A stretch of 32,000 nucleotides of DNA from Zygophlyctis sp. KS116 (taxonomy: Eukaryota > Fungi > Chytridiomycota). The notes below the pieces were generated by a model. The model did not search any database, was not told the origin of the DNA, and saw only the letters and a program-made list of their open reading frames with translations. This document shows positions 7,330 through 12,697 of the stretch, piece by piece; within the stretch, counting starts at the first letter, position 1, and each line of letters begins with the position of its first letter. The translations under genes were made by a program, and so were the position numbers. The stretch spans positions 19,978 through 51,977 of the forward strand of contig BAAFSQ010000053.1 of assembly GCA_054661495.1 (NCBI GenBank). Direction: 5' to 3'.

Positions 7330-10300
7330 TTAGCCTTTTTTATCTAGAGCTTTTAATTCTGCATTCAAGGTGGATTCTTTTAAAGTTTCAAAGAGATTAC
7401 GTCGCTTTGAATTTTGAATTAATGCTTTCCAATCTTTACTCTTTGATAAAGTTTGAGAATTTCCAAGGACAATCATTGTCTTTTTAGCTCTAGTAAGAGC
7501 AACATTCTGTTTTTTTCAAGATTATATAAATTACCATTCTTCGAGTGTCAGTAATGAATCCAAGTCCTCCGCCTGCACGAACACAGCTAAGGATAATAAT
7601 GTCCTTTTCTTGGCCTTGAAATCCATCAACAGTCATGACATCTATACTTTCGGCTAGAGCACGATCCAGATGCTTGTTTAATTGATTTTTAATAGGACGT
7701 ATTTGGTCCCTGTAAAATGATATGATTCCAATCTTATTAATAAAATTAGTTTCTTCTTCAGATCGGCACAAGAGTTTTACTAATTTAGCACAAATGATTG
7801 CTTCTTCAATATTGAGTAGGGAATTACGTGACGTTTTTTGCTCTCTTCCAAACGAGATATCGATAAATCTATAAGCCCCAAAAGTCTTGAGTTTGTGCCA
7901 CGATGCTGTACACAAAGATAAAACATTAGGGCCATTAAATAATTGAGAGTCGTAAAAGTATTCGCTAGGAAATTGTGATATTTCTGGATGCATACGGTAT
8001 TGCAGACTATTTTTTAAACTATCAATATAATACTTTAATAAATGAACAGATTTTCTGTTTACATTCATGATTCTTTGAAACAAACTTTGATTATATAAAT
8101 ATTTTTGGGCTTCTTGTGATATGACAGTAGGAGGAAGCTTGTATATTAAATACTATTACTTGTAAAAATACCTGGTTTGGATCACCAACAAGAATGCATT
8201 TCTTAGCCTTATATTGCAGTGGTATCAAGCAACTGATCTCAATAGATTGACAAGCTTCGTCGATAATGACCTATGCTTAACGAAAAAAGAATTATACAGT
8301 GTCAAAATTCAAATCCCGTATTTCAGAAAACATTTCATGACCAGAACCACTAAGTGTACATAAAATAATATCGGCATTAGATACTAATCTGGCTCTTAAT
8401 TCTCTGCGGGCCTTTTCTAGAGCAGCATTCCCTCTCTCTTTTGAGGTCTTAATTTCGTCCAAATTTTTGTGAAGAGCTGTCAACTTTTTATTGATTTCCT
8501 TGACTTCATTTTCCAGATCAGCACCGCAAGCAGTTGGATCCTTTGAAATCCTCATTCGTATCGTATCACGATCATCATGTAAAGCGGATATTTCGCGTGA
8601 AATTCCATTCTTTCTTTCTTCTATTTTCAACATGTTAGATTCTGATGAAGAAACAGAATCTTTTAATCCTTTCTCCATTAAAGAATCCTTAAAATTAGTA
8701 TTTCATCCTTTAAATTACCAATGTGACGCTTTGAACGGAAGGGTGAACAGAAGCTTTGCCAAATCGAATGATATTCGGAAAAAATGTTTTCCCATATATG
8801 TCAAATATACCTGATAGCAAACGCCGGCAAATTTCATCAACTGCAGCATTTGATGGTGCACAGCATAAAATTCGATTATGATTTAACGGTAATGATTCAT
8901 TTACAGAGCCTGGAGTCGGAATAGCTCTAGACTTCTTGATTGAAGCACCTATTATCCCAAGAATGGTCTTAGTCTTGCCCGTCCCTGGTGGGCCTTGTAT
9001 CATTATAAATCCTCGGTTCTGTGTAGTTGCTGCAATTATAGCTTCAGCCTGGGGTCCATTAACCTTAAATGCACTCATTATTTTTGATGTTCTAGATTTA
9101 TCGACCTGAGGAACTGATATTTTAGTTGGATTGAGGATCTGGTAGCCAAGAGAATATTCTCCCAGCTTGACCATTGCTTCGTATTCTCGAAGAGATGGCG
9201 TAAGAGATGTTATTTTCTTTGCAGACCAAACATTGCTCCTTATAAACGAAAATCCAGGAAGATAAACATTCAACGTCATATTCTTCGTTTCAGGGGACCT
9301 TGAAGTGACTGACTTAACGCGAGCCAATGCGCCAGGATGTGAATCAGTTCCTGATGCCTTCCAGATCATCAGCACGTCATTATCACAGAGCTCAAGTTCA
9401 TATATGGCACTAGATTCGACTGAAAAGGTTACATCTAATTGTGAGAAAGTTTAAAATTAAAAATACCAATAAAATCACCAATATGTGAAACATGTTGAGT
9501 TTCTATTTCAGTCACACCATTAGATCTATGTTCTTTCCATTCTGATGTTAGCTGACCCCATAATTCCGTTAAAAACAATGGATAGAAAGAATCAAAGTAA
9601 GACTGATAATCAACGTAAGAATCTTTCGGACGTTCAAGGCAGCCTATGCCAGGAGGAGTTGCACTAGTACTATCGGCAATATTCCAGGATAGTATCTGAC
9701 GATAAAATTTATCAATATCATGCAATTTAATATGCTTCTTTTGAGAGGCTATCACGCTTACTGAGCTTGAAATGGGATTGAGTGAGGTAATATCCAAGAT
9801 TTTTGTGGAACGCTTTTCCTTGACTGGACTTTTTTCCGGACCAAGTTTCGGAGCTGGCTTCGTGATAGATGCAGAATCATTCATTCTGCGAGCTTCAACT
9901 CTGACACTAGAGTTGGAAGATCGAATTTCAGCCTTGATTTGGCTAAGTTTCGATGATGATTTCTGATTCAGAGCGGGGGTTATTTTCTTGGAATTTCTAT
10001 TTACTTGAAACGAACTTTCCTTTCGCTTCAAAGAAGAGGTAGCCAGGTCAGTCCAAGAATCTAAGCTTCCCCAATGCCTATTTTGCTTGACTACATTTGA
10101 AACGTTTGCAACATATTCAATCTTCTTATCTTTGGCCTTCTCCAAACGAGCTTCTGGATCACTATTTTGATCATCTTTCATAAACGGCACTCCTGCTTTG
10201 GAGAAGAAAGATATATACGATGATGTGACATCATTTCCTACACCAGAGGAAGGTAAGACGTTTTCTAGCATTTTTGACAACTTGACAAGATCTTCATTCT

Positions 10301-12697
10301 GCAAAAGAGATGATCCCATGTACAGAATTGACGTCCCTAGACATGCTTTTCGAGTTTCATCATCATTCACCAGAACCCATTTAATCAGCAAACAATTTAA
10401 ATAATTCATTTGTTTCCTATCTGACTTCATGAACGAAAAATACGTCTTTAAAAGGTTCAACTGACGCAGTACAATATTTTTAAAATCTTTTGGGTATTGC
10501 TGCATTTCTATGAGCCATTTATGAGATATTCGAAGGATTTGAATCATCAGATTTTGAAATAGGCCTTTAAAAATAGAAATTTTTTCATCCAGATCAGACC
10601 TGGTACTTTTAAATATAGGAGCAAATAAGGCTGAGACCGCATCTACAATTCTATTTATGACCTGTAATTTTGGCTGCATATTTTCAGAAATTGAAATAAA
10701 AACTGATAAAAATTGTTCTGTGGTGTCTATAAATCCTTTTGAATCTTTCTTCATCAAGCTTTCTAGAAATTCATTTAAATTAAAGTTATCTGTCGACCCA
10801 GTAATAATTCGAATCAATTCATCATAGATGCCGTTAGAATCTAAAAACAGCAAAAACAGTATACGAGTTTGTAAAGTTCTTATAAATGCAGAGCGAAAAG
10901 ATCTTTCACTTCTTCCGATTTCTCTGATCATATTTACAATCAGCGATTGAATATGAGTATTTAAAGAGTCTAATTCTTGTGTTGTCTTTATCAATGATAA
11001 ATAACAAATTTCAGAAAAAGATTTTATCGCCAATACTTTATAAGCCCTATTTATACCATCTTGTGAAACTTTAATGTACAGTTGAGTCGCATCTTTTGAT
11101 AATTGGTTTATGTTTTCCAATTTAGGATTGTAAATACTATTTACTAAAACTTTAAGATCTCCAGCCTTTATAAGAAAACATGCTTCTATTGCTTGTAAAA
11201 TACTAGGATTAACTTTTGGGTCCTGTAAAAAGAAGACACAAAAATCTGTAGAATTTGAAAAATCCTTTTTAAAAAGTTCAGAGAGAAGAGAATTTAAATA
11301 ATCTTGAAAAGTGCAAGTCCAGCTAAATGACAGATTTCTTAGAAATCCTAAATATTTTACTTGTTCTGGAAACTCCTTTAGCCATCTCGGAACCCAATCC
11401 AATAATATTTTCTTATAAGAAAGAGAAGAATCCATTTTACACGTAGAATCCAAAATCTTTAAAATTTCCTTGAATTTCTCTACAGTCCCGACCTTTGCTT
11501 GAATATTCAAATTTGTATAAATCCTTAGATACTGATAAAAATTTGTATATTTTTCCTGAAACCTTTTTCTTACAATCTCTAAAAAGTCTGGAAAATCCCC
11601 AAGCATCCTAACAACCACTATCAGTTAGTTTTACATTATCGGACAAGACCATGAACAGGCTCTACTACGTTTTCTAGGAAACCTAACTCTACAATGACCG
11701 ACCACTAACGCTAAAAATCTAGAAACCTAACGCTAGGAGTCCAAAAGCCTACCTCTAAAAATCTAGAAACCTAACTCTAGAAATCTAGAAACCTAACGCT
11801 AGGAGTCCAAAAGCCTAACGCTAGGATCCTAGAAACCTAACGCTAGAAATCTAGAAACCTTAAAAGAAACTCCTAAAAGCAGCCCCTAAAACCAAATCCT
11901 AAAAGAAAGATAGAAAGAGCCTGCCGAGTCTCTTAAGAAAAACAATAAACCCACCTTTTTCATCCATTTTCTCTATTAAATCTCCCATCATCTCCAACAT
12001 TTCCTTTATATCCACAAACTTGTCCCATTCCGTCTCTTCCCCCCTTAAAATCCTAATAAATACTTCAAAAGTAGAGACTTGATAATCAGACTCTAAAACC
12101 CTAGATTTCTTGTTTAGAATTTCTATAGCCCATTTACTACATATAGATTCACGACTACACCTTAGCATTAAAATTCCAGGTAATATTTTATCTGCTAATT
12201 TTAGAGCAGGAAGTTTTCTAGAAATCAATTCCAAAAGTTGACAAATCAAATTCAAAAGTTGCATAATCCCTGATGGATCTGATAAAATTTCAAATAAAAC
12301 CAATAAAATCCTATTTCTTACAAGAGAAACATCTGCTTCTTGTAAAATTCTTTTATAAGTTGATTTTAAATTACATTATTAAACTCTTTTGAAGCCTAGA
12401 GACATCCAATTCCTTGCATTTTACAGTTTTACATTCTTTAGAGATTTTTAAATAACTTAGCACACATTCAAAACAGTTTGTCAGATTTTCCTGTATTTCT
12501 GTAGAGCCCTGAATATACTCTTGCAGTCCTAGAGCAGGATCTGAATGAAGACGATGCATTATAGAACTTGTAAACAGTGCCCCAATTGCACACACTATAT
12601 AAAAAGTGTATAATATTAGAATTTTAAGTAGTAATAAAACTGTTTTACAATTCCAAGTGTTGATTTCACTCTGTAAGACTCAAAAGTATCCAGCCAT
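7330..12697 (-). CDS. SEN1: Sen1/senataxin SF1 helicase with Sen1 N-terminal domain
   Basis: IQGPPGTGKT, CAPSNAAVDE, IIDEACQ, VGDPNQLPPT, QYRMHPEI, TVDGFQGQEKD and NVALTRAK motifs. Introns 12374-12350, 11954-11618 (long; donor uncertain), 9466-9435, 8718-8688, 8297-8271, 8171-8138, 8033-8007, 7534-7507. 5' end uncertain. Confidence 0.9.
11665..11864. repeat. 22-nt tandem repeat array inside the long SEN1 intron
   Basis: Units start at 11711, 11733, 11755, 11777, 11799, 11821 and 11843 (A=CTAGAAATCTAGAAACCTAACG, B=CTAGGAGTCCAAAAGCCTAACG; order ABAABAA). Diverged units at 11665 and 11689. Confidence 0.92.

Follow-up and report, generated by a model that had tools for sequence, protein, structure and literature searches.

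A long SEN1 intron with a predicted rod-like fold in a chytrid genome of tiny introns

The stretch analysed here, 32,000 nucleotides (nt) of the Zygophlyctis sp. KS116 genome (contig BAAFSQ010000053.1, positions 19,978 to 51,977 of the forward strand; hereafter the window), carries on its minus strand a SEN1-type helicase gene in which, among introns of a few tens of nucleotides, a single intron of 337 nt occurs. From its reading frames, splice signals and orthologues, the segment 11954..11618 is predicted to be an ordinary intron of the U2 type, whose position, in the N-terminal region of SEN1, is conserved. Judged by its repeats, it owes most of its extra length to a 21-22-nt unit that was duplicated in tandem within an older inverted repeat, and a stable rod is predicted to bring the 5' splice site near the branch site. 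The explanation towards which we lean, by a small measure, is that the array zips upon itself into this rod and so lets a machinery made for short introns splice a long one. That the rod enables splicing is plausible, and there is good precedent for such an effect in other systems (PMC6679479, PMC2536676, PMC12350175).

The long intron and its splice signals

The 3' exons of the gene encode the AAA_11 and AAA_12 domains (Pfam), and in a comparison with solved structures the top match of the helicase core is the yeast Sen1 helicase (5MZN, E = 8e-42), with Upf1 at 1e-21; the exon directly 5' of the long intron matches SEN1_N weakly (E = 0.001, below the Pfam cut-off). Relatives were found by separate searches with single exons, and two of them, a Logan contig (L008) and an ENA metagenome scaffold (L030), have an intron at the same codon. 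The exons around the intron, and the signals at its ends, are as follows.

7493..9375, minus strand: helicase core exons of the SEN1 gene (AAA_11, AAA_12), from Pfam and the match to 5MZN
9467..11617, minus strand: downstream SEN1 exon of ~716 codons, followed by a 32-nt mini-intron (9466-9435); relatives P0001 and P0002 are 68% and 60% identical
11618..11954, minus strand: predicted long intron of the SEN1-like gene, 337 nt, phase 1, spliceosomal, from the frames on both sides and the same codon in L008 and L030
11618..11629, minus strand: putative branch site and 3' splice site ACTAAC-TGATAG (ACTAACTGATAG); L008 has ATCTAATGATATAG
11949..11954, minus strand: putative 5' splice site GTGGGT, identical in L030; L008 has GTATGT at the same place
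11955..12349, minus strand: upstream SEN1 exon, preceded by a 25-nt mini-intron (12374-12350); 52% identical to the L008 exon as far as the donor

Removal of the intron joins two long open frames in phase 1, ..EKMDEK to VVVRMLGDF.., with ..GAAAAAG meeting TGGTTGTT.. at the predicted exon join across 11954/11618. The interior carries 9, 11 and 14 stop codons in the three frames, and no parse of the 337-nt region as a mini-intron, a micro-exon and a further mini-intron was found. The remaining SEN1 introns are all mini-introns, of 25, 32, 31, 27 and 28 nt. In L008, which has a 68%-identical exon and syntenic neighbours (BCCIP and SART-1), the protein similarity ends at ..EKMDQQ and restarts at VVQRMLHDF in the same phase, the 122 nt between these two points running from GTATGT to ATCTAATGATATAG. 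The interiors of this 122-nt intron and of the 337-nt intron of the window cannot be aligned, and the other SEN1 introns of L008 are mini-introns at the same places as in the window. L030 is a much closer relative, 98% identical in amino acids and diverged at 12 of 201 4-fold sites (6%), and has the same intron at L030:3350-3683, 334 nt in length. An outlier of 337 nt with an in-phase join, as first described from the sequence of the window, is thus borne out by the frames and by two relatives with an intron at the same codon.

The length norm from which this intron departs was drawn from 232 kb of the genome, that is, the window and a further 200 kb, in which 141 high-confidence mini-introns were identified, almost all of them 23-33 nt long with a mode of 25. 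Within the window, where mini-introns were called as bridges between open frames of good codon score, the clear cases number ~25 and span 23-32 nt. The earlier description of the short-intron norm, and of this intron as an outlier from it, proves correct. Donors of the mini-introns in the 232 kb follow the pattern GTA[A/T]NT, with GTA in ~85% of unambiguous cases and G at +5 in only 26%, and their branch motif is weak and TAAT-like (mostly TTAAT or ATAAT), located for the most part 6-8 nt from the 3' end.

Against this background the GTGGGT donor of the long intron is atypical, with G at +3 where nearly all mini-introns have A, and with G at +5 and T at +6 kept. The 5' end of the U1 small nuclear RNA is established, and a GUGGGU donor could form pairs with it at +1, +2, +5 and +6 and wobble pairs at +3 and +4. 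At the opposite end of the intron the branch A is located 7 nt 5' of the final G of the 3' AG, leaving 5 nt between branch A and AG, a distance that fits the range of the mini-introns (7 vs mostly 6-8 nt). The motif itself sets the long intron apart, as had been supposed: a full CTAAC is found in only 1 of the 141 mini-introns, and the more relaxed CTAA[CT] occurs in all three homology-checked long introns (SEN1, its L008 counterpart and an intron of BiP, described below) vs 8 of the 141.

The tandem array and the predicted fold

About half of the intron is occupied by a tandem array, absent from the original prediction, that far outscores every other tandem repeat of the 32 kb (256 vs at most 71 by Tandem Repeats Finder, TRF). 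Together with the repeats that surround it, the array is organised as follows.

11705..11860, minus strand: tandem array of 7.1 22-nt units, equivalent to 2.4 higher-order units of 66 nt (TRF)
11853..11908, minus strand: 13-nt tandem repeat, 4.4 copies, TTTAGGAGTTTCT on the transcript, adjoining the array (TRF)
11896..11948, minus strand: predicted 5' arm of the inverted repeat (intron nt 7-59), containing TTATTG, GAGACT and GCAGGCTCT, from the flank duplex and pair probabilities
11633..11680, minus strand: predicted 3' arm of the inverted repeat (intron nt 275-322), containing AGAGCCTGT, GGTCTT and CGATAA, from the flank duplex and pair probabilities

The array stands at the apex of this imperfect inverted repeat (intron nt 7-59 with 275-322), the last 48 nt of whose 3' arm are identical in L030. 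Its 66-nt units are 90% identical to each other, and its 22-nt units appear on the transcript as GTTTCTAGATTTCTAGCGTTAG and GCTTTTGGACTCCTAGCGTTAG, two sequences whose mutual pairing relies in part on G-U; motifs of the array such as CCUAGCGUUAGG are likewise palindromic only when G-U pairs are permitted.

Folded as the transcript, the whole intron reaches -114.5 kcal/mol, a stability that none of 100-200 shuffles attained (z-scores of -5.1 to -6.0), and its minimum-energy fold is a rod of 120 pairs, 38 of them G-U. The antisense strand folds much worse (-61.3 kcal/mol, z = -3.1) because the arms pair partly through G-U. The flanks contribute to this stability in their own right, since a duplex of the two flanks without the array gives -34.1 kcal/mol vs -23.4 +/- 3.7 for shuffles (p ~0.005), and the flanks joined by a short loop give z = -2.4. 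In the comparison with shuffled controls that had been proposed, both the whole intron and its flanks are thus predicted to be the more stable. Of the complementary blocks that had been proposed, two stand as described. GAGACT/GGTCTT (11932-27/11650-45) and GCAGGCTCT/AGAGCCTGT (11924-16/11663-55) each have a pairing probability P of 0.9-1.0 in the intron alone, and of 0.55-0.88 when 60 nt of exon are included on each side; the outermost block did less well, and is taken up below with the other points of its kind.

In order to examine the geometry of the ends, the fold was constrained to keep open the six donor bases and the tail from branch site to acceptor, with dinucleotide shuffles of the interior as the control. 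The minimum-energy structure under these constraints has 23 unpaired nt and one stem, which together count as 24, and the donor lies at most 20 steps from the branch site in 89% of sampled structures. When the constraints are lifted, the 5' splice site (GUGGGUU) is predicted to pair with the branch region (AACUAAC), so that in naked RNA both signals would mask each other.

Relatives and other long introns

Comparison with L030 offers what is in effect a natural swap of the intron interior, with stems kept and a length of 334 vs 337 nt. Units of the form GCTTTTGGATTCCTAGAG(T)TAG, 21-22 nt long, have taken the place of most of the array there, and despite this replacement the intron is predicted to fold to -114.2 kcal/mol (vs -114.5 in the window; z -3.4), with a flank duplex of -36.0 kcal/mol and inner stems whose pairing probability exceeds 0.9, as in the window. 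None of the 42 positions of the three core stems differ between L030 and the window, vs 15 of 63 columns changed in the rest of the flanks, a contrast for which Fisher's test gives p = 2e-4 per column and ~0.01 per event. In L030 pairing is re-formed as CUCUAUC/GGUAGAG by a T>A change on the 5' side together with changes on the 3' side. The invariance of the stems is suggestive of a fold that has been kept, and no more than suggestive because at 6% neutral divergence only ~2.5 changes are expected over 42 sites.

A second verified long intron in the same sample, of 161 nt, interrupts the BiP/HSP70 gene on the minus strand (G000:C6:23257-23417, equivalent to L027:3257-3417), where HSP70 model positions 136/138 verify it. 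A significant hairpin (z -3.2) is predicted for this intron as well, whose branch site is ATCTAAC. An ab initio search for long introns across the 232 kb, based on open frames, codon score and splice-site matrices, recovered the SEN1 and BiP introns and ~20 further candidates of 45-370 nt, several of them mis-parsed. Significant structure among these candidates was confined to SEN1 and BiP, and several of the others were revealed by Pfam as mis-parses. In one case the candidate was actually the gap between the ORC4 and KNTC1 genes (Pfam), while further ones resolved into combinations of mini-intron, micro-exon and mini-intron. The candidate at L010:7426-7550 (minus strand) turned out to be a RING finger split by a wrong donor, the true arrangement being coding sequence as far as ..HKCPLCN and then a 26-nt mini-intron; micro-exons therefore easily mimic long introns in this genome. 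A separate Pfam search for split domains (Pkinase, HSP70, DEAD, Sec1) returned many gaps of 22-32 nt and a sole long intron, that of BiP.

Two further noncoding stretches were encountered in or near SEN1 genes. In the window, upstream in or before SEN1, at least 78 nt of noncoding sequence (12757-12680, minus strand) lie between two frame-compatible open reading frames (ORFs), preceded by an ORF of 123 amino acids with an ATG (13126-12758) and followed by the first clearly SEN1 exon. This stretch cannot be aligned to L030, where its length differs, and may represent a second over-length intron or a spacer ahead of the true SEN1 start. In a third species (L009), the one contig that a metagenome scan returned, in which the exon is 60% identical, the sequence ends in another repeat-rich noncoding stretch, 67 codons further down; the contig breaks off there and is therefore uninformative on the long SEN1 intron. 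Upstream of ..LLDWIPKW this stretch (L009:1-232) measures at least 230 nt, made up of a polypurine run together with a 16-nt GC-rich tandem repeat and ending ..TAGACAG, and it possibly represents an intron, long and rich in repeats, at a point where the window has none.

Weighing the fold, and known systems

How might a spliceosome accustomed to tiny introns process this one? In the explanation we lean towards, the intron would have grown far past the ~26-nt norm at its conserved SEN1 position, with the imperfect inverted repeat directly inside the splice signals and, at the apex of that repeat, a CTAG-rich 21-22-nt unit that was tandemly duplicated and keeps turning over. Because the units would pair with each other in the transcript, partly by G-U, the whole insert could zip into a rod of ~120 bp at any copy number. 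The rod would keep the ACTAAC branch site within a few tens of nt of the 5' splice site, both in a single open loop, and would bury ~20 decoy TAG acceptors. With this geometry, a strong branch site and a donor that pairs with U1 at +5/+6, the tiny-intron spliceosome may handle the intron as if it were short, and the array would be tolerated because its expansion leaves the distance between the ends unchanged. A bolder proposal, to which we give a small chance, regards the array as a self-zipping minisatellite whose units expand, shrink and swap without separating the intron ends, and in its stronger version holds that the rod makes SEN1 splicing sensitive to unwinding, thereby creating a helicase feedback loop.

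A number of results weigh against a role for the fold. The outermost stem, TTATTG/CGATAA, is weak in the register in which it was originally proposed (P = 0.1-0.27), with neighbouring registers competing to produce the same closure. The figure of 24 nt left unpaired, put forward as a return to the intron norm, was reproduced, but the match is not significant: the exterior loop of 24 compares with a shuffle median of 32, and 20% of shuffles are as small. Similarly, the path of 9 steps from donor to branch site compares with a shuffle median of 17-18, and 15-21% of shuffles are as short. Ends of long RNAs generally tend to lie close together, and the ends of the shuffles come near each other for this reason; since the shuffles collapse to almost the same extent as the intron itself, the coincidence of 24 nt with the norm carries little weight. 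By the same measure the exterior loop is 40 in L030, 32 in L008 and 42 in the BiP intron, as against 24 here, and the BiP intron leaves 41 nt unpaired, above the norm. The minimum-energy fold of L030 lacks the outermost stem and leaves 39 nt unpaired, and the changes in its flanks cluster in T tracts prone to slippage. The 122-nt intron of L008 has a different and weak closing stem, of 4-5 bp, in both its minimum-energy and centroid structures, with a z-score of -1.5 to -1.7 that is not significant. To these may be added that the excess stability of the window intron is owed largely to the array, itself perhaps a side effect of slippage.

Several of these points are shared by an alternative in which the intron is real and its fold incidental, the array having arisen by slippage of a CTAG-rich, partly palindromic unit, with strong signals, namely the ACTAAC branch site and a donor with G at +5 and T at +6, driving splicing and a machinery that tolerates rare long introns. 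Such a reading would account for shuffles that fall little short of the intron in their collapse, for the weak outer stem and for an L008 orthologue devoid of significant structure; it is also favoured by the presence of CTAA[CT] in all three verified long introns, and by an array turnover between near-identical lineages that is fast, like that of neutral minisatellites. It sits less well with flanks that are complementary beyond chance outside the array (p ~0.005), with the 42 of 42 stem positions left unchanged in L030 while their neighbours changed, with an L030 array that folds to the same energy after its units were replaced, and with the significant hairpin of BiP, the other verified long intron in the sample. 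On balance we regard an incidental fold as possible, though doubtful.

Other readings assign the insert an identity of its own. One might see in it a regulatory or processed RNA element, the rod acting as a sensor of helicase activity in a self-regulation of SEN1 (cf. the DBP2 intron) or as a substrate for small RNAs. The host gene does encode an RNA/DNA helicase, a long intron is kept at the same position in three lineages, and the genome includes two Piwi-domain genes of the Argonaute type (G000:C95:7358-8288 and G000:C10:69581-70562), so that the organism probably has a small-RNA pathway. Contrary to this reading, the interior is unconserved even among close relatives, a hairpin intron is also found in BiP, which is not a helicase gene, and an Rfam search of the intron assigned it to no family, its best match (mir-1305, 27 bits vs a gathering threshold of 63) being a sub-threshold microRNA-like hit such as any hairpin gives. 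Such look-alikes lend nothing to the earlier suggestion of a noncoding RNA insert, and we consider a regulatory element unlikely, somewhat more so than the feedback proposal above.

Less probable again is a foldback transposon, akin to a miniature inverted-repeat transposable element (MITE), that settled in a former mini-intron and left its terminal inverted repeats as the flanks. In its favour, the splice signals directly enclose the imperfect inverted repeat, and excision of everything between the outer arms would leave a perfect 24-nt mini-intron. Searches of the 12.7-Mb assembly nevertheless returned the element, as a whole and by its units, in single copy: the full 337 nt matched their own locus only, and matches to the 22-mer unit all fell within the array with the exception of a look-alike on contig C143, a chance match with 3 mismatches inside an antisense ORF. 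No second copy thus backs the terminal-repeat element that had been raised as a possibility. By eye no target-site duplication was seen, and arms that pair partly through G-U, with an antisense fold of -61 vs -114 kcal/mol, are unlike an inverted repeat at the level of DNA. The idea of a recent insertion into a mini-intron also meets the difficulty that the distant relative L008, the species with the 68%-identical exon, has a counterpart that already measures 122 nt.

To the remaining possibility, an array of stacked 22-nt mini-introns removed in succession by recursive splicing with zero-length exons, we attach the least probability of all. The units start with GT or GC and end in TTAG, and their 3' ends score 4.6-7.5 bits, placing them at the 17th-47th percentile of real acceptors. 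Their starts, in contrast, GTTTCT and GCTTTT, score at most 0 bits, below all 141 real donors, by a matrix that was trained on GTA donors and is somewhat biased accordingly. The units moreover possess no branch-like motif, at 22 nt they are shorter than the usual minimum of 23, flanks of 96 and 65 nt would be left over, and the L030 units, of 21-22 nt, mostly start with GC.

A rod-folded long intron, if such it is, would add one more case to a pattern known from yeast and diplomonads. Structured long introns occur among uniformly tiny ones in Giardia, Spironucleus and Trichomonas (PMC6679479), and in the part of that study drawn upon here the few long introns can form extended stem-loops, their single-stranded distance between splice sites matches that of the short class, and the branch site is near the 3' splice site, all as proposed for SEN1. 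The hosts differ, in that those protists are intron-poor and the present genome is intron-rich and fungus-like, and so do the inserts, a simple stem-loop there and a fast-evolving tandem array here. The match to the short-intron length in the SEN1 intron does not exceed that of shuffles, a control which the same part of the diplomonad and parabasalid study does not report. Zipper stems of yeast introns offer a second likeness (PMC2536676, PMC12350175): a segment just 3' of the 5' splice site pairs with one just 5' of the branch site, the effective distance is shortened and the interior is extruded from the spliceosome. Their effect was established by mutation and in vivo probing, whereas here it is predicted, and yeast introns, normally 100-500 nt long, have no 26-nt norm to return to.

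Closest to hand is the 161-nt BiP intron of the same genome, which shares with that of SEN1 its rarity as a long intron, a stable predicted hairpin and strong splice signals. The SEN1 intron is the longer of these two, and the one whose bulk is known to be a tandem array that turns over in a near-identical lineage while the stems are kept. As regards feedback, the intron of the yeast helicase gene DBP2/DDX5 is self-regulating. SEN1 resembles it as a helicase gene with an unusually long structured intron, and differs in that the interior of its intron is unconserved; a feedback on SEN1 splicing would be hypothetical only, by analogy.

A more general caution follows from the shuffles, many of which also fold back to 24 nt, and claims of this kind need shuffle controls. 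In this species a few long introns that can fold stand beside hundreds of tiny ones per 100 kb. Were the fold to be required for splicing, this genome would constitute a natural test bed for the measurement of length by a spliceosome tuned to ~26 nt, and if the bolder proposal of a self-zipping minisatellite is true, such an array would be one of the few routes by which an intron may grow under a splicing machinery that measures length.

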